Shown here in pieces: positions 1 to 42,953 of a stretch of DNA of 64,000 nt; the first letter of the stretch is position 1, and every line of letters begins with the position of its first letter. Origin of the DNA: Anthoceros angustus. Taxonomy: Eukaryota; Plantae; Anthocerotophyta. Below the pieces are notes generated by a model. The model was given only the letters and a program-made list of their open reading frames with translations, searched no databases and was not told where the DNA came from. The translations under genes were made by a program, and so were the position numbers. The DNA lies in the NCBI GenBank assembly GCA_010909165.1, contig MU008155.1, positions 1,240,001 to 1,304,000 of the forward strand, in the 5' to 3' direction.

Positions 1-204
1 GGCTCCTACTCAAGCATTCCCGAGGGCAAGCAAGGCGGTGATGTGGGCAAGTATCGCAGAGTGGATGTGCGCTTTTCCGTCACTGCCAACATCGAGCTGC
101 TGGGTATTAAGAAGCTGTCCAAGCTGTTGGTCACCATTGTGCCTCAAGGTGATGATACTGAGAGGGGTGTGAAGCTCAAGGGAGCTCTACTCGACTTGGA
201 TTAG
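1..204 (+). CDS. PPO: Polyphenol oxidase, C-terminal end only (gene starts upstream of window)
   Basis: Frame 1 reads GSYSSIPEGKQGGDVGKYRRVDVRFSVTANIELLGIKKLSKLLVTIVPQGDDTERGVKLKGALLDLD*, nearly identical to the C-terminus of the PPO ending at 7001; TAG at 202-204. Confidence 0.9.
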   Translation, partial: GSYSSIPEGKQGGDVGKYRRVDVRFSVTANIELLGIKKLSKLLVTIVPQGDDTERGVKLKGALLDLD

Positions 205-4866: not shown

Positions 4867-7001
4867 ATGGATACCAGCAGCGCCTTGGCGGGCTGCCTGT
4901 CGGCCAGCGCAGCCGCGGCGTGTGCTGCGAGTGTGAGAGGCGGCTCGTTCCGGGTGCGCCCAGCGGCGTCCGGTGGCCCGGGAAGCGGCAGGTGCAACCA
5001 CGCGGTGGCGGTGCGGGCGGAGAAGAATGCCGACACCGGCAGCAGCAAGAGCCGGAGGGAGCTCCTTGCGGGGACTCTGGCCGGGACCATCCTGCTCCCG
5101 AGCGGCTACGCCCTGGGAGGCGTGGAGTCGGGCCCGCTCCCGGCCCCCGATCTCTCCAAGTGCACCACGGCGTACATGACCGCGGACAAGACCTACCCGA
5201 CGGAGTGCTGCCCGCCTGGATACACGGCCCCCCCAGACATCATCGACTTCAGGCCCGACCCCAAGATCCCCTTCCGCATCCGGCCCCCGCTCCACACCAT
5301 CGACGAGGCGTATGCGAAGAAGTTCAACCTGGCGTACGAGAGGATGCGCGCGCTGCCGGAGGACGATCCCCGGAGCTGGTACCAGCAGGCCAAGGTGCAC
5401 TGCTCCTACTGCAACGGCGCCTTCCCTCTGGCCAAGGGCCAGCCGGGCGCCGTGGAGCAGATCCACTTCACCTGGTTCTTCTACCCTTCCACCGCGCCGA
5501 GCTCTACTTCCACGAGCGGATTCTGGCGAGCCTTATCGACGACCCCACCTTCGCGCTACCCTTCTGGAACTGGGACAACCAGAGCCTCACCGCGGGTGCT
5601 AACCGTGTGCCGGCCTACTTCAACGACCCGCCTTCGCCGGCCTCTACGACAAGAACCGCAATGCCCTCCACATGCCGGAGGAAAGTACCCGATCGTCGAT
5701 CTCGGTATTTCGGCAAGGGTGAGTACACATCCGAGGATCAGGTGCGGGCCAACAATCTCGCCGTCATGTACAATGCCGTGGCCACCACGCTCACGGCCCG
5801 GGATTTTCTGGGGGGCAAGTCCTTCGCGGACGGCACCAACGGCGACGGCACCACAGTCGGGCAGGCCGGGAGCGTGGAGGGCGCGCCTCACACCAGCGTG
5901 CACATCTGGGGCGGGGACAAGGCCAATTTTCCCGTCATCAATGCGGTAAGCCAGGAGCGAATTTTTTGATCCGTGCTGCTGGCATTGGCATTGTTGGCGC
6001 ACTGGCTCGAGGATCTCATGATGGAACTTGTTGGGTTTTGTTGGGTTCCTTTGGGTTGGGCCTGCCAGGATTTGGGCAACTTTGCAACTGCGGCATTCGA
6101 CCCGCTCTTCTTCCAGCTGCACGGGAACGTGGACCGGCTGTGGAAGGTTTGGGAGGGGCTGCCGTCCGACCAGACGTCCACCGGAAAGCCCGTGCGGAAG
6201 GTGAAGCTGGCGGACGGCAGGATCCGGGGTGATAACTACAGGCAGAACTACCCGGACGCGGAGTTTTTGGACGCCGCATTCCTCTTCTACAACGAGAAGA
6301 AGCAGTTGGTGCGGATCAAGGTGAGTGACACTCTGGACCAGAGGGGCAGCTTGCGCTACGACTACCCCGAACTCAAGTCCGATCTTGCATGGCTCAACTA
6401 CGGCACGGTGCTGAGCGCGGCCAGTGGGCTGGGTGATGCCACGGCCAGCGCCGCCCTGCTGCAGGAGTACGCCAAGGACCCGAAGAGCGTCATTGACCAG
6501 CTGCAGAAGACGGTCAAGCCTGCTGCTGCTGGGTTTAAGGCGGATGATTTCCCGGAGTTCGGGTCCCGGAAGGCCCGGGGCAACAAGGAGCAGGATCTTG
6601 GGGACAAGCCGGTGACTCTGAAAGTGGTTCCGGAGCCCCTCACGCCTGAGTTGAAGGGTCTGGATTTCGCGGATCTGGAGAAGACTCTGGTGCTGCAAGG
6701 TGTGTTGGTGCCCAAAGAGGGCAACCTCTCCTTCTCTGTCTTCATCAACTTCCCAAGCGCAACGGACAAGACCCCCAAGTCCATCGCCCAGTACGTCGGC
6801 TCATACCAGAGCATTCCCGAGGGCAAGCAAGCCGGAGATGTGGGCCAGTACCGCAGAGTGGATGTGCGCTTTTCCATCACTGCCAACGTCGAGCTGCTGG
6901 GTATTAAGAAGCTGGACAACCTCTTGGTCACTATCGTGCCTCAAGGTGACGATACCGAGAGGGGTGTGAAGCTCAAGGGTGCTATCCTCGACTTGGATTA
7001 G
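4867..7001 (+). CDS. PPO: Plastid-targeted polyphenol oxidase (type-3 copper enzyme), 2 exons, ~671 aa after correcting 4 single-base losses
   Basis: Ser/Ala-rich transit peptide, twin-Arg SRRELL, PDLSKC, CuA (QQAKVHCSYC, IHFTWFFYPFHR), CuB (GAPHTSVHIW, DLGNF...DPLFFQLHGNVDRLW) and plant PPO C-terminal domains. Frame changes at C/G runs 5484-86, 5627-29, 5680-81 and 5704-05. 2135 nt minus the 123-nt intron plus 4 gives 672 codons exactly. Confidence 0.93.
5946..6068 (+). other. Phase-0 GT-AG intron within the PPO CuB region (123 nt)
   Basis: GCG|GTAAGC donor and CCAG|GAT acceptor. Splicing joins FPVINA to DLGNFATAAFDPLFF and removes the in-frame TGA at 5967-5969. Confidence 0.88.
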
Positions 7002-15972: not shown

Positions 15973-18893
15973 GTGGTCAGAGCTGAACGCCAAGATGCGG
16001 CTGCGGAGGATGACGCCGCCATAGGAGGCATTTCACATGGCATGGAGGGCAGTACAGATGGCTATGATAGCATGGATGATATGGATAGCTCGGCGTCCGA
16101 TGACGTGTCCTCTGCAAGCGCGGCCTCCATTGACCGTAGCCAGTCGGGCGACAACAACGACGCCGACACTGTGCAAGCCGAACTGTTACATGGAATCGAT
16201 CACATGGGGATGGAGGCCACGCAAGCAGGCGAATTAACCACCGTGGAAGTGCACCAGCCTTGCAAATCCAAGGAAACGGAGTTGACTGCCACGTTGATCC
16301 TCATCAGCTTGCAAACCAGGCATGGCATGTCAGATGTGGCTGTCTCTGACATGCTGCAGGCCGTCTCCCAACATTTATTGCCGGTAGGGAACGCATTGCC
16401 AACCTCACTCGAGCAGGGGAAAAAGCTTTTGGCCGCATTCGGCAGCGGGTATGATAAAATCCACGTCTGTAAAGGTGATTGCGTGTTGTTTAGAGGTGAG
16501 TACGCCGATCACACCGCATGCCCATTGTGCGGTCTCTCGAGGTATATCCGTGGAAAAGTCCCACACAAGTGGCATTTTCCTATCAAAGACCGCATCCGTC
16601 GCATGTTCTGCTCTCCTGTTACCGCCCGCAACATGACCGCCTACACAGGGCTACGTAGCGTTGATGGGCATATGGGTATCATGGCGGATACGCCGACATG
16701 GCGGCTGGTTGATAGCTTGGATGGGTTTGGGTCGGAGGCCAGGAATGTTCGGTTTGGCATAGCAACGGATGGTTTCAACCCATTTGGTCACCGGTCTGCG
16801 ACATCCACCATATGGCCAGTAATGCTATTTGTGCACAACTTCCCCCCATGGATGACAACAAAGCCGGAGCATGTGCTCATGCCCCTCATTGTGCCAGGCC
16901 CTCATATTGTAAAAAACTTTGATGTCTTTATGCAGCCACTCCTAGAAGAGCTGCGGGATTTGTGGGTGGAAGGCATGCCTGTCGAAGATTTCTCGATGCC
17001 TGCGACTGATCCTGGCAGACGCTTCAATGTTAGAGCAGCGGTTCTGCACATTATTGGAGATTATCCTGCTTTAGGGATCATGGCAGGCCTGGTCGTACAT
17101 GGGACGCGTGCCTGCTTAGACTGCTGGCTAGGTTTGGAATCAAGATGGGCAGCTGCGCTTCATAAACATGTGTACCCGGGAGCCCGCCGTTTCCTCCCAG
17201 CTGATCATGAAATGCGCAGAACGAAAAAGGAGTGGTTCAACAATGAAGAGGAGCACCGCCCACCACCGGCCCCGCCGTCGTTCGACGAACTAATGGCTGA
17301 TATGGGTCAGCGGGAAGTGGCGACTTCCAGGGATTTAAGAGTAACCGGCCGGTTTGGGACACGAAGGAAGTCAACGTGGTTCGACTTCCTACCGTACTGG
17401 AGGCACATGCTGAAGTGGGCCCCGAAAGATGTCATGCACCTAGAAAAAAACAATGCTGAGTCCATATGGCATACATTGACAGGAGAACGAGACGACTTTG
17501 CTTCACGCGTTGACATGGAATCCACAGGAGGGAAGTCATGGCTGTGGCCCAATCACGAAACCGAGACATTTCCCGATGCACGGTACGTGTTAACTAAGCC
17601 CGATTTAGACCTTGTGCTTAAAGAAATGCGGCAGATCCGGCTACCCACCGGTTATGCCTCAAACATAGCATCAAAGTTGGCAAAGGGTAAGGTTGGCACA
17701 CTGAAGACCCATGATTGGCACGTGGTAATGCAAGTGTATTTCCCCATTGTCCTTCGACAACGAATTCATCCAGATGTGTATAAGGCAATCGCGGGGTTGA
17801 GCCGGTTGTACAGGTGGATATGCCAACGGATACCAGTGCATGCAATCGCCGATATGCGGGAGGAGTGCATAAGGGTCATGTGTGTATTGGAGGAACAGTT
17901 TCCGCCGAAGCTTCTGGATATTTCGACACACCTCGTACTTCACTTGGTTGATGAGGTGGAAGCTTTGGGCCCAGTGCACTGCAGATGGATGTACCCAGTA
18001 GAACGTTATCTCGGCTTCCGCAAACAGACAATCAGACAACGAGCCAGGCCCGAAGGCAGCATGGCAGAAGGGTACATCCGGCATGAGTGCATCAACTTTG
18101 CTAAAGCATTCCTCCGCCAGCATTATGGGAACACCCGTCACGTTTGGATGGATGAGGATGACAAGGACAATGAGCCTATGGGGCGAGGGTCCGAACATAC
18201 CTTAACAGGGACGGAGCGTGTGCAGGTACACAATTATGTTTTGTTCAACACGAACGTGTTGCGGCCTTTTTTGGACTTGTATGATGCGTTTGTCCGGCAG
18301 CTTAGGCCTGGCGTGCAGAAGCCATGCTTCAGAGAATGGGTGCATGCTATGAGGGTGGGTGGAGAGTGGGACTCCCATCCTGGAATGTGTGATGATGCCC
18401 GCGCCATCATGGCTGGGCCACACGCCAATGCCATATCATATAACCACATGATGAGCAAGGGAGCCCACATCCGCACAATAGCCGCAGATGACAGTCGTCG
18501 TAGAACGCAAGACAGTGCCGTATTCACCCGGTTTTTTGTAGGGTTAGCTGGCGAGGACTTGCGGAACGGATTTTTTATGGCCATGTAGAGGAGATTTTGC
18601 GTGTATCATTCTCGGATACATACAAGCCTATGGTATTGAAGGTTCGCTGGTATGAATGCGACACGGAGGCACATCCGCCATCCTTGCGATCGACATTTTG
18701 TGGGTACGACATGGTGTACATGGGACGGAGGTGCACATATCGGCCGGGAAGTGAAGACGGGCCATTCGTGTGGCTTGCGCAGGTCACGCAATGTATGCTG
18801 CATCCCGACCCCATATCGGTGAACCAGAATTGGGCTTTAGCTATTCCCCTGCCGGCTCGCGGTTGGAAGGACGTAGAAACGGAGGCGGCGTAG
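15973..18893 (+). CDS. CACTA transposase (Transposase_21/Tnp2 + DUF4218 + DUF4216-like)
   Basis: NVRFGIATDGFNPFG, IIGDYPAL, DVMHLEKN, LKTHDWHV, GPVHCRWMYPVERY, RPEGSMAEGY. One extra T in the T6 run at 18571-76 continues into FYGHVEEIL...VLKVRWY (974 codons in total). A CPCRIC motif at 15776-15793 may be an upstream exon. Confidence 0.93.
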
Positions 18894-22363: not shown

Positions 22364-22986
22364 CCCTTTAGTCACCCCATCTAAGTACCTAGGTACTTAA
22401 CAACTTGATACATGGTGTGCCTATGCTACTTGCACCAACATCCACTCCCTTTAGACACCCCATCTAAGTACCTAGATACTTAACAACTTGTACCATGGTG
22501 TGCCTAAGTTACTTGCACCAAGGGCATCCACTCACTTTAGGCACCCCATCTAAGTACCTAGGCCCTTAACAACTTGTACCATGGTATGCCTAATCTACCT
22601 GCACCAAGGGCATTCACTCCTTTAGGCATCCCATCTAAGTACCTAGGTACTTAACAAGGTATACCATGGTATGCCTAAGCTACTTGCACCAAGGACATCT
22701 ACTCCCTTTAGGCACCCCATCTAAGTACCTAGATACTTAACAACTTGTACCATGGTGTGCCTAAGTTACTTGCACCAAGGGCATCCACTCACTTTAGATA
22801 CCCCATCTAAGTACCTAGGCCATTAACAACTTGTAACATGGTGTGCCTAATCTACTTGCACCAAGGGCACTCACTCCTTTAGGCATCTCATCTAAGTATC
22901 TAGGTACTTAACAAGTTATACCATGGTATGCCTAAGCTACTTGCACCAAGGGCATTTACTCCCTTTAAGCACCCCATCTAAGTACT
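22364..22986. repeat. ~86-bp satellite, 7+ units, with internal palindromes and a 3-unit higher-order repeat
   Basis: Unit starts about 22364, 22447, 22533, 22618, 22704, 22790, 22875, 22961. TAAGTACCTAGGTACTTA is a perfect palindrome at 22382-22399 and 22636-22653. Confidence 0.93.
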
Positions 22987-23285: not shown

Positions 23286-23836
23286 GAAATGTGTGATGTT
23301 TGAATGTAAAACGTTAAGCACCCCATCTAAATCTTAGTGGGAGAACTCCTCCCGTTAGAGTAAGAAAGAAATGTGTGATGTTTGAACCCCATCTAAATCT
23401 TCGTGGGAGTCTTTTAACTGTTCGAGGAAAATGTGCGATTTTGATGCAAGACGTTACCCCATCTGAACTCTAGTGGGGTCGCTTTGATTTCTATCATGAC
23501 CAAGGCTCATCAGACAGCAGGCCAGCTTCTCTTTGCGGTCGCAACATCGCTAGCGCCAAGGCGTGATTTTGCATTGATCGTTTCCGCTTATGAATTCAGA
23601 GTCTCACGATCCGAATGTCACGAATTTCAGGGTGCTGAAATTCTCTTAACATATGTACCTGGTTCGTGACTGATGTGGCAGCTCGTGTTCTCGCCATTCC
23701 TGGCAAACGAACTGTCCTCCCGTACCAGTTGCATCGACGTCCCCTGGTCAGAATTTAGAATCCAAAACCAACTGTGGTGATCAAATTAACACAAATTTAA
23801 AGGCGAGGAAGTTGAGTTTGCAGCTGTGAGGGAGTT

Positions 23837-24644
23837 TCACTGTTTGTATGTGGAGATGAGCACAGAGTCTGGCAGCCAGCGAATGTACTCCATGTGAGAC
23901 TTGTGCTCCACTGTATCGAACTCCTCCGGGTGGGAGTTGAGGTAACTGCGATAGTCAGGCGCGCCTGGAATTGTCATGTTGTCGGCCACCACGACGGTGC
24001 CTGTCTTGAGGAATCCACCCTCCTTGAGCAGCAGCATGTCTGACAGGTAGTAATGTTTGTGGTGGTCTAGAAACACAAAGTCGAACCCGGTTGCCTTGAG
24101 CTCCTTCAAGATGTTGCCCACCTTTTCTAGCCCCTCACTGAACACCCCTGCCACAACGGTCACCTTGTCCGACAGTCCTGAGAGCGCATCGACAGTCAGG
24201 TCACAGAAACCAGAAAGCCAGTAGCTGAGATGTGAGCTACTCCTAGCATGGGCTGGTACCTGCGTGATGGACAACCTTGCGTGTGATCTCTGCATTGTCA
24301 GGGTTCCTCTCCACAGACACCAGCTTGGAGTCGGGTCGATTGAGCTGGCTGGCGATGCGCACGGCAGAGTAGCCACAGTAGGCGCCAATCTCTAGCGCAA
24401 TGCGGGGATTGCACGACTGCAGGGCGCCGTCCAAGATGAGGCCCTTCTCGTCTCCCACATTCATGAGCCAGGTGCGCTGCGCGAACTCGTCCACCGCCTG
24501 CAGCACTGACTGCGGGTTGCCTTGCTCCGCCTGGCTCAGCACATGCTGCAGCAGCGCCTTCTCCCTGCCATCGCCCACATCGCCTCGAGAGAACGTGAAC
24601 GGGCCCATGGCCCTGATGAAACTCAGCACCTGCCACACTCCCAT
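23837..24644 (-). CDS. COMT: Catechol O-methyltransferase (Mg2+/SAM-dependent, animal/actinobacterial COMT type), 2 exons, 241 aa
   Basis: Exon 1 24644-24260, intron 24259-24178 (GT...CTGAC...CAG), exon 2 24177-23837; 726 nt with no frameshift. Motifs MNVGDEKG, LEIGAYCGYS, VFLDHHK, VVADN, PGAPDY, HMEY. Confidence 0.92.
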
Positions 24645-24822
24645 CACCGCGGGCTGGCTCCCCCTTTGGGTTGGCTCAACAATCTCCCTGCAGCCTCTGT
24701 AGTGAGCGCTGCAGATTGGCTTCTTGTGAAGGTTGCGCAAGTAGAGGCTGCAGTAATGGGCTGGCTCACTCTTTAGCGGGACAGACGAGGACGAAGGATA
24801 ATCGTTCACAGCACGTGATTCG

Positions 24823-26844
24823 TATGGCATACCAAAGAGGACACAGGGGATGGGGCATTTTTTTTCACGCAAAAGCCATACAAGGCATAGGCCCGAAGAG
24901 GACAGAGGGGATGGGGCATATTTTTTCACGCAAAAGCCATACAAGGCGTAGGCCCAAAGAGGACAGAGGGGATGGGGCATTTTTTTTCACGCAAAAGCCA
25001 TACAACGCGTAGGCCCAAAGAGGACAGAGGGGATGGGGCATTTTTTTTCACGCAAAAGCCATACAAGGCGTAGGCAGAGGACAGAGGGGATGGGGCATTT
25101 TTTTTCACGCAAAAGCCATACAACGCGTAGGCCCAAAGAGGACAGAGGGGATGGGGCATTTTTTTTCACGCAAAAGCCATAGAGGGGATGGGGCATTTTT
25201 TTTCACGCAAAAGCCATACAAGGCGTAGGCATCTTGAGAACTGTACCACACATTTCATACGGATTGCTTTCTCACAGCACATGCTCAAATGTCCGCTTTG
25301 GCGCCCTAACCAGGAGCGGCCAAGCACCAAAGGGACACACACTCTTTCTCTTCGAAATGGGTGTGAGCTTGAAAATTTTTCAGAAAACAAAGAGTCTTCC
25401 GCCCTACCTTCTACTATTAAGTTTTCTTCGATGCTATCCCATGGCCACCAAACACTAACCCGACCATGGTCTTCGAAGGCAATGATGGCCGCGGCTGCCG
25501 GCACGGCCATGGTTTTGCGAACCTGCATATGCCCGCGGCTATGCCCGCGTCTTCTTAGCTAGAGACAATGGAATCGTAATTTTGTTAGGGAACCTGCGAT
25601 GCTGGAAATATTAAGAAGCACTATCCTCTTCGAAACAGGAAGAAGCACGAGCCCGCTCGAAACAGGAAGAGGGGATGGTGCTGGAACATGGAAGCCGCCA
25701 CTGCCATCATGCAGCCAGGAGCACGCGTAACATGTACCTCAGCGTCTTGCCTCTCCATCCATCACACCATCACACTTGCGGCAGTGTTCGTCGTCCACCG
25801 CGGTTCCGCATGTGCGATACCCCGTGTACAGGAAAAACTGCAAACTGCGAGGTGTCCACTACGCGTATAATCACCTCCACACCAATCGCCCGAACCACAC
25901 CGAGGTGCCGCGTAGAGTGGCCACCACCCGTTCTATGCACCAATCGTCGCCTGCATTGGATGTCTCCGCCCCTTCCGTCATCCCTGGTCGGGCGCTTCCT
26001 GCTCCTCTTGCCCTTGGTATTTCCAAGTTCCTCCTTCCCAATCTCTACATGTTTGGGATTGGCATCTGAACGTTCACCTACCGCTGTGTAGTCGAACCCA
26101 CGGATAGGACGGGTATGCTGTTGCCGTTCCATGGCACTTGACACTCGTACTCCACACTCTTGTTTTTTCATCCCTACCCACATGTTTTATTTCACGCGTG
26201 TCATCGCCGGCCAACATACATGTCGTAGTCACCTTCTATGCTAGCGTGTACGCCAAAATGCTATGAATGCTTTGGTCATATTGGTCTGGCTTCATTATGA
26301 ACACAATCATCTATAAGAGATGGAACAAGTCTTGAGATCCATAGTACACTATCATCCAAGCCTTGCATATATAGCTTTTGTCTGTTTATTCTCTCGCTTC
26401 AGCAATCCCTTTACCTCCACAGCAGCCTGCTGGCTGTTACTTCCACTTTGTTCTGTGCTAATTTTATGCATGTTCATCGCGCCATACATACATCCACATG
26501 CCACGTGACATCCATTCCTTATATGCACATACACACGCTTCAAAAAAAATCCACATGTTTCTACACAACCACTTGGGCTGTAGTGACTATGGCTCCCCAT
26601 ATCTTCGGTTTATTGCAAGTGAATTATATGCCACCCGAACTCCATATGTGGTTTACACATGCCACAAACGAAGTTCCCTTTCTGTGTACCGGTGAGCGCG
26701 AAGTGGCTGCTTTGGTGCGTCCGCTTTGGGCTACCCCATTTCGATCGGGTTACTAAACCGGACACCAAAAAGACATGTGGTGTGAACAAAAGTTTCGCAT
26801 GCGAAAAATGTGCCCCATCCCCTCTTCCTCGTTGGTATGCCATA
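24823..26844. mobile_element. 2022-bp non-autonomous TIR element with a candidate 6-bp TSD (GATTCG)
   Basis: Left end TATGGCATACCAAAGAGGACACAGGGGATGGGGCATTTTT is the inverted counterpart of right end AAAAATGTGCCCCATCCCCTCTTCCTCGTTGGTATGCCATA. GATTCG flanks both ends (24817-22, 26845-50). Confidence 0.6.
24832..25230. repeat. ~61-bp tandem repeat, about 7 copies, built from the left-TIR sequence
   Basis: CCAAAGAGGACAGAGGGGATGGGGCATTTTTTTTCACGCAAAAGCCATACAAGGCGTAGGC repeated, three copies truncated. Confidence 0.93.
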
Positions 26845-34150: not shown

Positions 34151-36524
34151 GAATTAGTGGTGTTTGGCCCTCGTTCATGCAATTTCATTAACACTGTTGA
34201 TTGATTGAAGATTATTTATCTTATTTAAATTTTACCTTTATATTAGTCCAGACTATTTTACCACAATCTATGTAGTTATCATATTTCAGTTCCATGACGG
34301 AAATCCGTCCTTAGTGGACTTAAATAAAATTCTTCTTCTCCTCCTCTACTCCATGGGGCAAATAGCCCGGAGTACGAGTCTCATGGCGGTACGGTTGTAC
34401 CGATTCTTTAGAGGACTTCAAATATAAATAAATTGTTGTAGTCGTTGCTATATTCGGTTGTACCGATTCTTTAGAGGACTTCAAATATAAATAAATTGTT
34501 GTAGTCGTTGCTATGTTACTGGTTGTACCGATCCAAGCTCAGGATGCTTAATCACGGCGTTCTTATAAATGTGTGTCTAAAGGGAGTAGATGCCCTTGGT
34601 GAAGTAGGCACACCATGGTCAAGTTGTTAAGTACCAAGTCCCTTGACGGAAATCCGTCCTTAGTGGACTTCAATAAAATTCTTTTTCTTCTTCTGCTGCT
34701 GCTACTGCTGAGTTGGATGTTCGTATGGATTTCTTGCGTCATCCTAGTTAAAGGGACAGCAGTGCCTGCTACTTATCACCTTTTGCAGTCAGGTCGCTGG
34801 GATGGGACAGCTTCTGCACCACCGATCAGTGCCCTCTTCCACTAAAGACCAAGTTCCTTCAAACCCTGATTCCATCTACCGCAAAGCTGTTGGAATTTCC
34901 ATCTACCGTAAAGCTCCCAACAGCATTCCTGTTCAAGAAATGGATGTCGACTGACCCTGAGTCCCATCGTGTGATAGCATTTGCAGGGCGCCCGTTGAGA
35001 CGCTCGGGGGCAGGACTTCTGAGCTGCAGCGCCTGAGCAGATCCAGGAAGTGCGGGAGATACGCCAGAGGAATGGCAATTGTGCTGCCAAGCCGCAACCG
35101 CGGCAGCCGAGAAGCTTTTGCCCTGTGCAAGCTGTTTAGAGGCAACGTGCAGCCCTTCAGACGGAGCCTATAGCGAATCTGAAGTTCCAATAAAAACCTG
35201 TTTTGTGCATCTCGCGAATCGAAGAAAAGAAGAAGAATTCTCAGGACTATTCCACCCACGGGGGAGGTACAGCTACTCCCACTGCTCCGATCCTGTTCAC
35301 ATTGTGCCCGCCTTGGGTCCCAATCCTGATATCGTTCTTGAACGCAACTGTTTTTTGCTGGTTGCCGTCGGAGCTGGAGTGGAATTTTCACGGCCATATA
35401 GGGCGAGCACATATGCCCCTTCCTCATTTGCTGCAAAAAGCGTGACGTTTTCACTCTCCACGGCCGACCACGAAAGCCTTGCCGACAGCGGCGGACACAC
35501 GATTGTCCTCGCGAGAGGAGGGGAGAAGCACATCTGGAAGCTGAGTCGAAAGTGGCCTAGAAAGTTCCGGGGAGCACGTGGGAATGCAATAGTGAGCTAT
35601 ATGTACCTGACTACAGTACTACTCGGACACGCGGCCTGGTTTGCCGAGCCCTTGCTTAACAAACCTCTCATCGGAGCTTCTGGCATCAATTAAGCAAAGC
35701 GCCTGGAGGCCAGGTGCAGCGGAGCTCTGTGGCTTGGAATGTCGCTGGCCGTACGAGCTGTGCCCATTTTCCGCATCACATACAGTTGCCGATGATCGCA
35801 GGCCCTTGCAAACCCTGGCACGGTCCTGGACACTACGAAACAAAAAGCAAGCTGAGAAAACACATGAGCCAGTGCGAGAATCCCACTTGCCTGATATCAG
35901 TCTACAGTATGCCATTGCCGCACTGGCTGCACTGCATGCAAATTTGCCAAACGCAGAGCAGCAGATTGGAGAAGGATGCCCGATGAGAAGTCTGGAGCCT
36001 GAGCCTCAGAGGCTGATTGGAGAATAATCTGAAGCAGGCTCCGTGTACGCCTTTTTGCGAAAGAGGCCAGGAAGGAGCATCTGCCGAATAAGGTGGAGAG
36101 TCACATGTGGGGAACTGTGCAGTGCACGGTGCACACCTGGTGACAAAGTGACAAGGCGGATAGGAGCAGTGTGCACGTTTTGCGGGAGCGTGGCATGCGC
36201 CACCACCAAGTACAGTGCTGTTGCGAGCGAATGCTCATCCGGATGGGTGGTGATGCCGTCGCCCACCATGGCCCGGGATGCAGAATTTGCAGGTGCGCTT
36301 GTAACAAGTCTACAGTGGCTGCCGTGTCAACCAGACAGCAACACAGCAAAATTGGTTGTCAACGTTTGCTACCCTGTCCAAGCCCGCAATCCCCCAAACA
36401 CGATGCCCTTACCCGAGTCGTGGATCCCGGAGAATCGGCCTGGTGACGTCTCGCTGCTCTATATTAAGGCGCTGGAGGGAGGGGAGAGCAGCGTGTCGCC
36501 CAAGCTTCGCTTTTGGAAGCGGCG

Positions 36525-36531
36525 TATAAAA
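36525..36531 (+). promoter_or_regulatory. Candidate TATA box for the ABCB gene
   Basis: TATAAAA about 260 bp upstream of GCCATGG at 36789; an alternative TATATTA lies at about 36460. Confidence 0.3.
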
Positions 36532-36788
36532 CTGGGCGGGCAGAGAAGGGGACGAATCCATGCCCCCGAGTTCCCGAACTCCCTGTCGCCGAGCGCCCAC
36601 AGACCCACGGTAGAGGGAAGCCCTAGGCCGTGCCCGTGGCCCGTCCTGCCGATCCTGGAGCTTGGAGATGCGATTTCCGGATCGATGAGAGGCGCGACTG
36701 CGCGCCGCATTCGACCGGCCGGGCTCCACCGAGACTGCAGCAGCTGGCTGACAGCAGCAGCAGCATCTGCAGGACGGGGCTAGCTGCC

Positions 36789-39700
36789 ATGGAGGCGGGC
36801 GACGTCGGTGACGGGCGGTACCAGAGCCGGGCCTGGGGGGCGAGGTCTGAAGCGGGAAAGGAGAAGGAATTCGCGGCGGGAGCTCCAGCCATGGCGCCCG
36901 CAGCGGCCGGGACGAAGGCGGGGTGAGCGGGGGCCTGGAGCCGGAAGGCGGTGCCCTTCCACCGCCTCTTCGCTTCGCGGACGCGCAGGACTGGGGTCTG
37001 ATGCTCTGGGCACGGCGGGGCCATCCTGGACGGCCTCCCTCCCGTGATGCTGCTGGTGATGGGCGGCTCATCAATTCCTTCGGGGAGAACTCAAGTCGTG
37101 AAGCCGAACTTCATGGGCGAGATCCGGAAGTACACCGAGGCCTTCACCTACATCGCGATCGGCACCATGGTGGCCAGCTACCTGGAGGCGTCCTGCTGGA
37201 TGCGGACCGGGGAGCGGCAGACGAGCCGGATCCGGCACAAGTACCTCCGCGCAATTCTCCGGCAGGACGTCTCCTTCTTCGACCTGGCGGGCACGTCCAC
37301 GGCGGAGGTGGTGAACTCTGTGGCCGTGGACTCCATGGTTTTCCAGGAGACGCTGGCCGAGAAGATGGCGCACTTCGTGATGAACGTGGCGGGCTTCATC
37401 GGGGGCTACGCGGTGGCCTTCTTCCTGGCCCCGAAGATGGCGGCCTTCATCCTCGCCTTCTCCCCGCTGCTCATCGTGCCCGGGGTGCTGTACGGGCGGA
37501 CCCTGACGCAGCTCTCCCGGAAGCTGCAGCAGCAGTCCGTGAAGGCGGGCGCCGTGGCCGAGCAGGCGCTGTCCGCCATCCGCACCGTCTACTCTTTCGT
37601 CGGGGAGAAGCGCAGCAGCAGCGACTACAGCGCGGCGTTGGCGGAGACGGTGCGGCTCGGCAGCAGCAGGGCTTGCCAAGGGGCTCGCCATCGGCTTCAA
37701 CGGCGTCTCCTACCTCATCTGGGCCTTCGCCGCCTACTACGGCGCGCGCCTCCATCAACGAGGGTGTGAGCGGGGAAGATCGTGGCCACCGGGCTGGCCT
37801 CCATGGTCGGGGGGCTCGCCCTCGGGCTGGCCCTCCCGGATCTGCGCTACTTCGCGGAAGCCACCGCGGCGGCGGCCACCATCTTCTCCATGATCGACCG
37901 CGTCCCCGCCATCGACAGCGACGACCCGGCGGGGACCCAGCTGGAGACAGTGCAGGGCGAGCTGGAGCTGCGGGGGGTGGAATTCCGCTACCCTTCCCGC
38001 CCCGACACGATCGTGTTCCAGGACATGAGCCTCGTCATCGCCGCGGGGCAGACGGTGGCTTTGGTGGGCGGTAGCGGGAGCGGGAAATCCACCGTGGTGG
38101 CGCTCCTGGAACGGCTCTACGACCCCGCCGCCGGGGAGGTGCTCCTGGACGGGGTGAACATCAAGAACGTCCAGCTCAAATGGCTGCGGCTGCAGATCGG
38201 GCTGGTGAGCCAGGAGCCGGCGCTGTTCGCCACTTCCATCATGGAGAACATCCTGCTGGGGAAGGAGGGCGCCACGAAAGAGGAGGCCATGGCCGCCGCC
38301 CGCGCCTCCAACGCCCACGACTTCATCTCCATGCTCCCCGCCGGCTACGACACCCAGGTCGGGGAGCGCGGAGTCCAGATGTCAGGCGGGCAGAAGCAGC
38401 GCATCGCCATCGCCCGCGCCCTGCTCCGCAAGCCCCCCATCCTCCTCCTGGACGAGGCCACGAGCGCGCTGGACGCGGAATCGGAGCGGGTGGTCCAGGC
38501 CGCGCTGGACAGCGCCGCCCTCGGCCGCACCACCGTCGTGGTCGCCCATCGCCTCTCCACCATCCGCCACGCCCACAAGATCGCCGTGGTGCAATCCGGG
38601 CGGATCGTGGAAACCGGGCGCCACGACGAGCTGGTGACCCGGGAAGGCGGCGCGTACGCCGCCCTGGTCCGCCTCCAGCACACCCGCGCCTCGCAGAAGG
38701 AGCTCCACGATGAGATCGCCAGGTGTCCTCCGCCAGAGTCTCCTCCTCCCTCGGCCTGCGGCTCAGCTCGCACCGCATCTCCAGCGCCGCCTCTCCAACG
38801 CCAGAGGCGGCCCCTCACCTTGGAGGAGGTGGACGTGCCACCGCCGGAAACAGGAGAAGCCGCGCCGCCAAAAGCGCCGTCGTTCAAGCGTCTCCTGGCC
38901 TTGAACAAGCCGGAGTGGAAGCACGCGGTGCTGGGGTGTGCGGGGGCGGCAGCGGCGGGGTTCGTGCAGCCCCTCTACGCCCTCCTGCTCGGGACGCTGG
39001 TGTCCGTCTTCTACTACACCGACAAGGAGCGGGAGAAGCAGACGGTGTCCAAGTTCGCGGGTGGTTTCGCCGCGCTCTTCGTGGGCGCGGTGCTGGTGAA
39101 CCTGGTGCAGCACTACAACCTGCAGGTGATGGGGGAGAAGCTGACGCGGCGGGTGCGGGAGATGGTGCTGGAGAAGGTGCTGACGTTCGAGGTCGGGTGG
39201 TTCGACGAGGAGGAGAACAGCTCGGGCGCGGTGTGCGCGCGGCTGAGCAGCGAGGCCAACGTGGTGCGGGCGTTGGTGGGGACCGGTGGCGCTGGTGGTG
39301 CAGGTGATGGCGGCGGTGCTCTTCTCGGCGGCCGTTGGGCTGGTGGTGGCCTGGAAGCTGTCCTTGGTGATGATCGCGATACAGCCCTTGGTGGTGCTGG
39401 CGTACTACGGGAAGAAGATGCTAATGAAGTCGGAGTCCGGGATGGCGATGCGGGCGCAGCAGGAGTCGAGCGCGCTGGCGAGCGAGGCCGTGTGCAACCA
39501 CAGGACCATCACAGCGTTCTGCGCTCAGGATCGGATCGTCGGGCTCTTCGACGCCATGCAGGACGGGCTGAGGAAGGAGAGCGTGCTTAGGGCTAACGTG
39601 GCGGGCGTGGGGTTAGGGCTGGCGCAGTTCACGCTCTACGCCACCTGGGCGGTGGATTTCTACTACGGCGGGAAGCTGGTGAGGGACGGGGACATCTCCT

Positions 39701-40632
39701 TCCACGCCATGTTCATCTGCTTCTTCGTGCTGGTCTCCACCGGGAGGATCATCGCGGATGCCGGGAGCATGACCTCCGACATCGCCAAGGGCGCGGGGGC
39801 GGTGGCCGTGCTCTTCGCGATCCTGGACCGGAAGACGCTCATCGACCCCGACGGCCAGGGGGAGAAGGTGGAGAGGGTTTCCGGGCACATCGAGTTGAAG
39901 GATGTGGATTTCGCGTACCCGGCCCGGCCTGACATCATGATCTTCCGGAACTTCAGCCTCAAGGTGCGGGCGGGGACGAACGTGGCCCTGGTCGGTCAGA
40001 GCGGGTCTGGGAAATCCACCATCATCGGGCTCATCGAGAGGTTTTACGATCCGCTGCGGGGGAAGGTGAAGATTGACGGGAAGGACGTCGCGACGCTGCA
40101 TCTGCGGACGCTGAGGCGGCACATCGCGCTGGTGGGGCAGGAGCCGACGCTCTTCGCCGGGACCATCCGGGAGAACATTTTGTACGGAAGGGAGAACGCG
40201 AGGGAGGCGGAGGTGGTGGAGGCGGCCAAGGCGGCCAACGCGCACGACTTCATCTCTGCGCTCGCGCACGGGTATGATACCAATACCGGGGAGCGGGGGC
40301 TGCAGCTGTCCGGCGGGCAGAAGCAAAGGATCGCTATCGCGCGGGCCATAATCAAGAATCCCGCGATTTTGCTGCTGGACGAGGCCACCAGCGCGCTGGA
40401 CGCGCAGTCGGAAAAGGTAGTGCAGGACGCGCTGGACAGGGTCATGGTGGGGAGGACCACCATCGTCGTCGCGCATCGGCTCACTACCATCCAGAACGCG
40501 GACTCTATCGCCGTGCTGCAGGACGGGGCCATTTTGGAGCAGGGCCGGCACACGGAGCTCTTGGATAAGGGCGAGTCCGGGGCTTACTACCAGCTGGTGC
40601 AGCTGCAGAGCAAGATGGTGGTGGAGACGTGA
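36789..40632 (+). CDS. ABCB: Full-size ABCB/MDR (P-glycoprotein) transporter, TMD-NBD-TMD-NBD, apparently intronless
   Basis: [12 protein letters not shown]1 GGSGSGKS (38067-90)/[22 protein letters not shown]2 [15 protein letters not shown]. Protein is split over frames by small indels at about 36920-37090, 37670-37780 and 39280. MSGGQ in NBD1 recalls the Arabidopsis ABCB15-18 group, which is not proof of orthology. Confidence 0.93.
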
Positions 40633-42149
40633 GCTTCCTTCCTTCCTTCCCTCCTTCCTTCCCACGCTGCCACGATATATTCTACACATGTGCACCACGT
40701 CAGGGGACGGATGAAGACTACTGGTAACATTCGCGGCTTGTGGTAGATCTAACGGAGCCTGATGTTCAGCGGGTGGCACATGTAATTCCCAAGCGCTCCC
40801 CTCATGCCCGCGCAACACCACAATTGCTTTGTTGGGCATACGACAAAACACCTCTCTCCTGGCTACCAGAGTTTCCCTCCCTATCTTCTCGAACAAATAT
40901 TTGGCTGTCAGGCAATGTATCCTACAGCTAGCCATGGAGTTACAGTTCCAGAGCAAGACTGCCTACAATGTAAGCCAGGCCAATCCCATCCCGCAATCCT
41001 TACTTGCGAAGGAGCAGCTGGGGACCTTATGATGTATCCAAAATTGTCAAGGAAGCGCGGAATATGTGGTGACTCGAATCGAAGGGATTCCATGGTGGTA
41101 GCACACTTCTGATACGTACTAGCTTTTGAGGCGATAGGATAATGACATTAATGTCAGGGAGTCCCTCCCTTCGAGTGTTTTAAAGTTCAATCGAGCCCAC
41201 TTCCTGCATATTAATCTAAGGGGGGTGAAAAGCATGCTTACTAGGTAGTGGAGAATGAAGAGCATCCTGGCCCGACCCGGCACGATCTAGGGAGTCAGGG
41301 CGAAGCTACTGTCATGCTCGTCGGAGGCCGTCGGGGTTATTAGTTTAAGGTATGACCTATAACAACAGTTAAAAGGTTATGGGAAAATACCAATTATGGT
41401 AACTCGCAGACGCCCTCCTCTGCAATCTGCTCAAAATCGTTACCAAATCTCGCTTTACTTTTTCGGTTAGTGGTTGAAAGTGAGTTCTTTTCCTTAATAA
41501 AACTATTCAAACTTGGCATATTCCTTTTTCAGACTTCCAACATACCCACGTATTGAACGGAATAAACTTGAAATATCCATTTCTTTCTCAAATTAAAGCT
41601 TTCTACTTTCTTAATTGAGTAATTTTTTCCCTTCTCGAATTAAATCTTTTCACTTTCAATTTAGTAACTTTTTTATAATAAAATGATTTATAAGATAGGA
41701 GGCTATGATGTCATAGATGAAACAAATGCATATGTGCACCAATAAGCATGAAACTTGGGAACACTCATATTAGAGATAACCTCCAAGCACCAAGTACATA
41801 TAAAAGAGGAACCAAATCATATGAAAACACTCATAATACAGATGAGACAAAGACATCGAAGCACTAAGTAAACCAAGAAGACAAACCAAATGAGATGGAA
41901 AGCACTCATAATAAAGATGCCACAAAGACCTCTCAACAACAAGTAAACAACGGTCACAAGATGATGAGCAACAAGGTCCATAAGAGATTTCAGCAACTTC
42001 TTCGACGACAAGAAGCTAACCCCAGCATAACTATCACAACGCCCCATCTACAAACTCCTGGATCTGTATGTAGTCTTCTCTCTATTTGAAAGGGTATCAA
42101 TAGTTGTAGATTTTGAAAGCCCCAATTATCCAAACATGTTGACATTATA

Positions 42150-42953
42150 ATGGATTTTCAGGTTGTTATAAAACAAAATATATATAACGCAAGCGGAGAA
42201 GATTTTGATGACATTTACAAGCTAAATAAAAGAATTGGGAGAGGAGATCATGGTGTTGTCTATGAGTGTATAAATCTAAATACCAAACAACTATGGGCCT
42301 GTAAATGTATCTCACTACTTGGAAAGAGTGCAGGCTTCATCCACATCGTGAATCGGGAGGTGGAGATTATGAAACATCTATCAAATCATCCTTGTATTGT
42401 AAGATTCCAAGATGTTTTCCAGAATGACAGTGAAATACGAATAACTATGGAACTATGCAAAGGAGGTGATTTGTTTGATTATGTCACGACTAGAGAAGAA
42501 TGTGATGAGAAATATATTGTTAAATTATTCGAACAAGTTATTCAAGCTATTAAATGTTGCCATGACCACGGGGTTATGCATGGAGATTTGAAACTACAAC
42601 ATTTTCTTTTCAATGATGGTGACAAGCAAACCCTAAAACTTATTGATTTTGGGCTGGCTACCCAGGTTGCTCCCTCACATATAACTCATCAGGTACTTAT
42701 TCCACATTTTATAATAAAAGACGATATTTGGAGTGCAGGCATAATTTTACAACTTTTAATGTGTGGATATCCTTCCTTTAAAAATATACCTCTTGAGGTA
42801 GCTAGGAGTGAAAATTCTTCTCCAATATATGAAAATTTTAAGTCTAAAATTTCATCACATGGGAAGGATTTAGTACACAGTATGTTAGATCCTAAGCTAA
42901 GGACTTGCTTAACATTAGAGCAAGTTCTTAATCATGCTTGGATGAAAATGTAG
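42150..42953 (+). pseudogene. AT-rich, degenerate CDPK/CaMK-like kinase domain (open 267-codon frame)
   Basis: GRGDHG, ACK, EVEIM, ELCKGGDLF, HGDLKLQHF, DFG, DIWSAG, LNHAW. No APE motif and no EF hands. Confidence 0.75.

Follow-up and report, generated by a model that had tools for sequence, protein, structure and literature searches.

The locus and its transcript

The window, i.e., the whole stretch of 64,000 nucleotides from the hornwort Anthoceros angustus that was analysed, carries a catechol O-methyltransferase (COMT)-type gene of two exons and 241 codons at 23837-24644 on the reverse strand. The coding part of exon 1 (24644..24260, (-) strand) starts with the ATG at 24642-24644 and comprises 128 codons plus one nucleotide of a split Gly codon. 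It encodes an N-terminal helix, the GDGRE motif, the equivalents of W38 and M40 (rat COMT numbering), the SAM-binding GAYCGYS loop and the equivalent of E90. The intron (24259..24178, (-) strand) is 82 nt long with GT..AG borders and interrupts the Gly codon of HAG-LSDKV in phase 1, the hyphen marking the junction. The coding part of exon 2 (24177..23837, (-) strand, stop codon at 23837-23839 included) contains FLDHHK with the equivalents of D141, H142 and the base K144, as well as ADN (D169/N170), PGAP (P174) and the equivalent of E199, and its 3' end encodes a plant-type tail ending in STYKQ.

A 922-nt contig from the same organism covered 23758-24176 and 24259-24761 at 100% identity, with no mismatches, and exactly the 82-nt intron was skipped. 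This spliced transcript contig (23758..24761, (-) strand) extends past the coding part by about 117 nt of 5' UTR, in which no ATG occurs, and by about 79 nt of 3' UTR. The contig set was taken to be a transcriptome, since the intron and the intergenic flanks were uncovered. Contigs from two related species, at about 93% identity, had a splice joint identical to that of the window gene. The COMT-type gene is spliced and expressed, and the intact 241-aa two-exon gene proposed in the first-pass annotation, with its splice at 24178-24259, was borne out in coordinates and structure. Among the 38 nucleotide differences listed against the two related species, 23 were synonymous and 15 non-synonymous (dN/dS roughly 0.2), and none touched a catalytic residue. 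Judged by these substitutions, the gene is under purifying selection between related species.

A second copy lies about 15 kb away on the same contig (8363..8823, (-) strand), with approximately 80% nucleotide identity to the intact gene. It is truncated at the 5' end, and what remains are the final 29 codons of exon 1, followed by the intron and by an exon 2 that has lost 30 nt. Its reading frame is broken by indels, ADN has become AYD, and the 3' end is divergent. The duplicated stretch of the COMT gene is only about 470 nt long. By these features the copy is a truncated pseudogene, arisen by duplication of DNA. The local duplicate announced by the first-pass annotation does exist, but only as this degenerate fragment.

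Around the two copies lie plant genes for polyphenol oxidase, an ABC transporter and a protein kinase, along with a CACTA transposase. The polyphenol oxidase gene at 4920-7001 (+) holds Tyrosinase, PPO1_DWL and PPO1_KFDV domains in one frame, which is broken by an in-frame TGA (5967-5969) right after a T run. The C-terminal scrap of a second polyphenol oxidase, 88% identical, lies at the very start of the window (1-201, (+) strand). From the 3' end of the polyphenol oxidase gene to the COMT pseudogene there is 1.4 kb, and this adjacency is probably incidental, since polyphenol oxidase arrays are common in the genome. A functional link between COMT and polyphenol oxidase was considered and rejected, both because such arrays and scraps are common in the genome and because only about 470 nt of COMT were duplicated. 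Between the pseudogene and the intact gene, an 871-aa ORF (15973-18588, (+) strand) combines Transposase_21 (tnp2) with DUF4218, a pairing that points to a DNA transposon of the CACTA/En-Spm type. Two tandem repeats flank the intact gene. One, with a unit of 61 nt (24832-25181, 5.8 copies, 94% matches), lies upstream of the COMT transcript contig, some 70 nt from its 5' end, and gives rise to numerous short ATG ORFs that overlap on both strands. The other is an 86-nt satellite downstream of the gene (22400-22985, 6.9 copies); all three related organisms have it in their transcript sets, at very high depth and in many partly fitting contigs, which marks it as a dispersed and apparently transcribed repeat. 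Further along, a region of 65-67% GC at about 36000-41000 (+) contains exons of the ABC transporter (ABC_membrane and ABC_tran, twice), and the protein kinase ORF is found at 42150-42953.

Assignment of the product to the COMT-type enzymes

The exons were queried separately throughout, as 24261-24644 (-) and 23840-24175 (-), each with its own search or tree row. Against PDB sequences, exon 1 matched human, rat and mouse COMT with an E value of 1.6e-30 and about 50% identity, and exon 2 matched the same proteins with 2e-17. The next best was the COMT of S. pombe (1e-10 for exon 1 and 4e-12 for exon 2), while CCoAOMT and norbelladine O-methyltransferases (OMTs) reached only about 3e-4. In Pfam, exon 1 scored 36.3 bits with PF01596 (cut-off 22) and the exon 2 fragment alone 16 bits; the class II OMT domain PF00891 gave no match in the exons at E values up to 0.1. 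The product is colinear with COMT-type proteins of 240-250 aa.

Individual residues were checked in an alignment of six vertebrate, 36 plant and nine bacterial members. The Mg ligands D141, D169 and N170 and the catalytic base K144 are all four kept, as are the SAM-binding residues M40, G66, Y68, S72, E90 and H142, and also W38, P174 and E199 of mammalian COMT. At the substrate gate, W143 is replaced by His in the window gene, with W38 and P174 kept. Column 143 varies across the plant and bacterial clades, and it probably tunes specificity rather than defines membership. Where rat COMT has Glu199, the Xenopus tropicalis enzyme has Gln, a difference from the other sampled vertebrates. By its sequence, then, the gene is a COMT-type class I O-methyltransferase, with a small soluble product predicted to depend on Mg2+ and SAM.

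The likeness to vertebrate soluble COMT (PDB 3a7e, 1vid, 1h1d, 4p58) amounts to about 45-51% identity over the whole catalytic domain and comprises the Pfam family, the Mg ligands, the catalytic Lys, the SAM-binding residues, W38, P174 and E199. The two differ in that the window gene is without the membrane-anchor isoform, carries the plant/bacterial GDGRE N-terminus and has W143 replaced, as well as in intron positions and in their placement in separate clades (95/94). With CCoAOMT (PDB 1sui) the product has in common the class I fold, Mg dependence and PF01596, but the match is far weaker (3e-4 versus 1e-30 for COMT), and the YrrM-type proteins of PF01596, used here as outgroup, have DADK or DAAK where the window gene has DHHK. 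Caffeic acid OMT belongs to class II (PF00891), a different and metal-independent fold family, in contrast to the window product of 241 aa with no PF00891 match. Enzymes of that class combine Methyltransf_2 and dimerisation domains in about 360 aa.

The sequence motifs on which the first-pass annotation had relied (NVGDEKG, LEIGAYCGYS, FLDHHK, ADN, PGAP, GDGRE and the tail EHKSHMEY...PDSVLISTYKQ) were all found. Its comparison with mammalian COMT, including the Mg ligands and K144, agrees with the E values of 1.6e-30 and 2e-17 and with the residues kept, and its statement that the protein is unlike caffeic acid OMT and distant from CCoAOMT holds equally. The resemblance to mycobacterial proteins that it named turned out to be real: GDGRE and several residues of the tail are invariant across the plant and bacterial members.

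Distribution, shared intron and phylogeny

When the exon 1 region was used for a word search, the proteins of lycophytes, liverworts and mosses ranked first at 50-61% identity, followed by those of Nocardia (52-57%) and of vertebrates (44-51%). A search with a plant profile recovered members from the liverworts Haplomitrium, Marchantia polymorpha, M. paleacea, M. emarginata, Plagiochasma, Riccia and Calypogeia, the moss Sphagnum, the lycophytes Diphasiastrum and Selaginella, and, with many proteins, the gymnosperms Cryptomeria, Ginkgo, Araucaria, Taxus, Pinus and Welwitschia, as well as a homologue from the zygnematophyte Mesotaenium endlicherianum. All plant members scored above all bacterial members. 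Among the named proteins in the best 120 of 2,523 profile matches there were neither angiosperms nor ferns, and other named algae were not found in a search from the Mesotaenium query. Several plant members already bear the name catechol O-methyltransferase in NCBI, UniProt or JGI, e.g., those of M. polymorpha and S. moellendorffii. Four liverwort sequences (QCG81599-81601, APX42106.1) were deposited as cloned O-methyltransferases, and this accession series presumably corresponds to published liverwort class I OMT enzymes. A search for published work tying catechol O-methyltransferase to horizontal transfer, land plants, bryophytes, lycophytes or Haplomitrium gave nothing relevant, and the family is not mentioned in the bryophyte pangenome paper.

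Close comparison was possible with M. polymorpha BBN08573.1/OAE29541.1, S. moellendorffii XP_002979270.2 and Sphagnum magellanicum CY35_09G089500, further with the four liverwort sequences above and with the families of Cryptomeria, Ginkgo and Pinus. Identity to these plant COMT-type OMTs is 50-65%, and the length of about 240-250 aa, the N-terminal helix, GDGRE, the catalytic residues, the STxK tail, the single phase-1 intron in HAG-LS(S/D)KV and the membership in one supported clade are common to all. They differ at position 143, which is His in the window gene and Asp, Phe or Trp in the other plants, and in copy number, the window having one gene and one pseudogene and the gymnosperms large families. 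On these matches the plant family to which the gene belongs is known and already annotated; the gene is an ordinary member of it and appears to be its hornwort representative.

Some particulars of other members were recorded along the way. Two COMT-type genes stand in tandem in Selaginella (436-1211 and 1501-2297 of its locus), with 290 nt between them. In Cryptomeria the conserved intron has expanded to 10,235 nt, and one contig carries several members of the family. The UniParc entry UPI00024AF0BB (301 aa) is a member of the plant clade and groups with Sphagnum; it looks like a model with the intron retained, as about 40 extra residues follow directly on HAG, at the very site of the conserved intron.

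Genomic copies from Diphasiastrum, Sphagnum, Riccia, Cryptomeria and Selaginella each contain only one intron, which splits the Gly codon of HAG-LS(S/D)KV in phase 1, just as in the window gene. The identity of site and phase in five distant plants places the origin of both the gene and its intron before the land plants diversified, and an intron at least as old as the land plants rules out intron gain after a transfer into the hornwort lineage. The COMT gene of Xenopus has three introns, none of them at the plant site. An intron common to plants and animals was accordingly rejected as a candidate, the nearest Xenopus intron lying five codons downstream in a different phase (phase 0).

The main tree contained 54 rows and was computed under LG+C20+F+G4, with each window exon as its own half-length row, placed independently. 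Both window pieces fell inside the land-plant clade (96/93), in a polytomy with lycophytes and bryophytes, and the Mesotaenium homologue was placed close to this clade. The bacteria formed one clade (100/100) on a stem of 0.61, with Nocardia nested deep inside. Vertebrate COMT and four further sequences were separated by a 95/94 branch from the plants, the Mesotaenium-like sequences and the bacteria. In AU tests, a constraint that held the streptophytes together, Mesotaenium included, was not rejected (p 0.22), and a constraint that joined the plants with Nocardia, Mycobacterium and Rhodococcus was rejected, at a log-likelihood difference of 59 (p 0.00045). Trees with added taxa, i.e., fungal COMT, fish TOMT, algal-like transcripts and two YrrM-type outgroups, supported the land plants with the window pieces at 93-97 and the bacteria at 100. 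In a quick tree rooted with the YrrM-type outgroup, the land-plant clade with the window pieces had a support of 97. The plants, algal-like sequences and bacteria were set against the opisthokont enzymes at 96, and at 98 when rooted with YrrM-type proteins.

By the trees and the intron, the gene has come down vertically since at least the first land plants, and probably from as far back as the ancestor shared with Zygnematophyceae. The first-pass annotation had offered two origins, horizontal acquisition followed by intron gain, or an old gene lost from seed plants. The former fails on the land-plant clade (96/93; 97), on the intron common to five plants and on the rejection of a Mycobacteriales donor (AU p 0.00045); the gene groups with a broadly conserved, vertically inherited green-plant clade, the very placement which that annotation had itself set against its proposal. 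The latter was right as to age; the loss from seed plants as a whole is, on the profile matches, wrong, the gene having been kept in Cryptomeria, Ginkgo, Araucaria, Taxus, Pinus and Welwitschia.

Close bacterial relatives are encoded in at least 595 species genomes, mostly of Actinomycetota (Nocardia, Mycobacterium, Mycolicibacterium, Rhodococcus, Pseudonocardiaceae, Solirubrobacterales, Acidimicrobiia), and also in some Chloroflexota, with one protein from an acidobacterial MAG. The actinobacterial COMT-like OMTs have 45-57% identity to the window product and have in common with it GDGRE, DHxK, ADN and the VEH..EY tail. They group with the plants and not with the animals, but they form a clade of their own on a long stem, have no introns and carry an aliphatic residue in place of W38, and the plants are not nested among them. 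By the tree groupings, the plants have their closest relatives in the bacterial clade, and the bacteria theirs in the plant clade.

Origin and proposed function

We consider the locus to be a functional, nuclear and vertically inherited plant gene for a COMT-type class I O-methyltransferase, and put the probability of this reading at roughly 0.85. Contamination of the assembly by animal or bacterial DNA, favoured by the first impression of an animal-like protein and nothing further, is excluded. The intron site is plant-specific, the contig also carries a degenerate paralogue at a distance of 15 kb, two related species have this gene, with the same splice, in their transcript sets, and the neighbours (polyphenol oxidase genes, CACTA transposase, ABC transporter, kinase) are ordinary plant ones; the first-pass annotation had reasoned likewise from the intron and the duplicate. 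A recent, lineage-specific transfer from Actinobacteria of the Nocardia or Mycobacterium type, followed by intron gain, could draw on the exon 1 identity to Nocardia (52-57%), which is as close as that to some plant homologues, and on the GDGRE motif and tail residues common to the bacteria. We regard it as very improbable, given that the window gene sits inside the land-plant clade, that site and phase of its intron are common to five distant plants, and that the sampled bacteria form one clade without plants (100/100, stem 0.61) in which Nocardia lies deep; a tree that joins plants with Mycobacteriales is worse by 59 log-likelihood units (AU p 0.00045). The horizontal transfer tables of the A. 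angustus genome paper, as far as they were available to us, list no PF01596 protein or catechol OMT. Little more credit is due to the idea that the gene is expressed as an enzymatically dead or repurposed relic, e.g., a binding protein. The decay of the nearby copy to a pseudogene and the loss of the W143 gate residue would fit it, but the Mg, base and SAM residues are all intact, synonymous changes are in excess between species, the frame is open and correctly spliced, and position 143 is variable across the whole plant clade.

The deeper past of the family is a separate matter. A single, very ancient exchange that linked bacteria with the streptophyte stem and preceded the split of Zygnematophyceae and land plants, with vertical descent in plants since, is plausible from the closest relationship of the plant and bacterial clades, and in our estimate falls just short of an even chance. 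It could have run in two directions, from a bacterium to an algal ancestor, or from the plant line to a large actinobacterial clade; the latter is possible since, in the outgroup-rooted tree, the bacteria form a single clade inside eukaryote-dominated diversity. The exchange is favoured by the grouping of plants, Mesotaenium-like sequences and bacteria apart from vertebrate COMT, TOMT and fungal COMT (95/94; 96; 98), by the plant intron coinciding with none of the three in Xenopus, and by the size of the bacterial clade (at least 595 species genomes, mainly Actinomycetota). On the other side, the order among land plants, algal-like sequences and bacteria was not settled by the trees, the outgroup branches are very long, many of the key rows are metagenome or transcriptome proteins, chlorophytes and early-branching streptophyte algae were not found among the matches, and a common slow rate could mimic the grouping of plants with bacteria. 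The fuller scenario is held more tentatively still, namely that one inter-domain transfer predating the land plants founded both the streptophyte and the bacterial COMT-like clades, the latter of Actinomycetota and allied soil bacteria, and that the flowering plants later lost the gene and the other sampled land-plant groups kept it.

For the plant gene itself, the conserved active site suggests a mechanism. Mg2+, held by two Asp and one Asn, would bind both hydroxyls of a vicinal diol, the catalytic Lys would deprotonate one of them, and the methyl group of SAM would pass to the deprotonated hydroxyl. Candidate substrates are the plant's own catecholic phenolics, such as compounds of the caffeic-acid and rosmarinic-acid type, coumarins such as esculetin, and flavonoids with vicinal hydroxyls. 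The hornwort Anthoceros accumulates the catechol ester rosmarinic acid (PMC13646711). A diversified choice of substrates is suggested by position 143, which is His here and variable across plants.

The 'animal-type COMT' of this plant genome is thus an old plant gene and not foreign DNA, and it looks exotic because the model flowering plants apparently lack the family. Where angiosperms have lost a family, the taxonomy of best hits (here Nocardia and vertebrates) misleads. The sister relationship of plants and bacteria poses a modest question about the deep history of COMT. For the plants, the gene marks out a conserved, little-studied enzyme family of non-flowering lineages, which probably decorates catecholic phenolics, and hornworts, liverworts and conifers are rich in such compounds.
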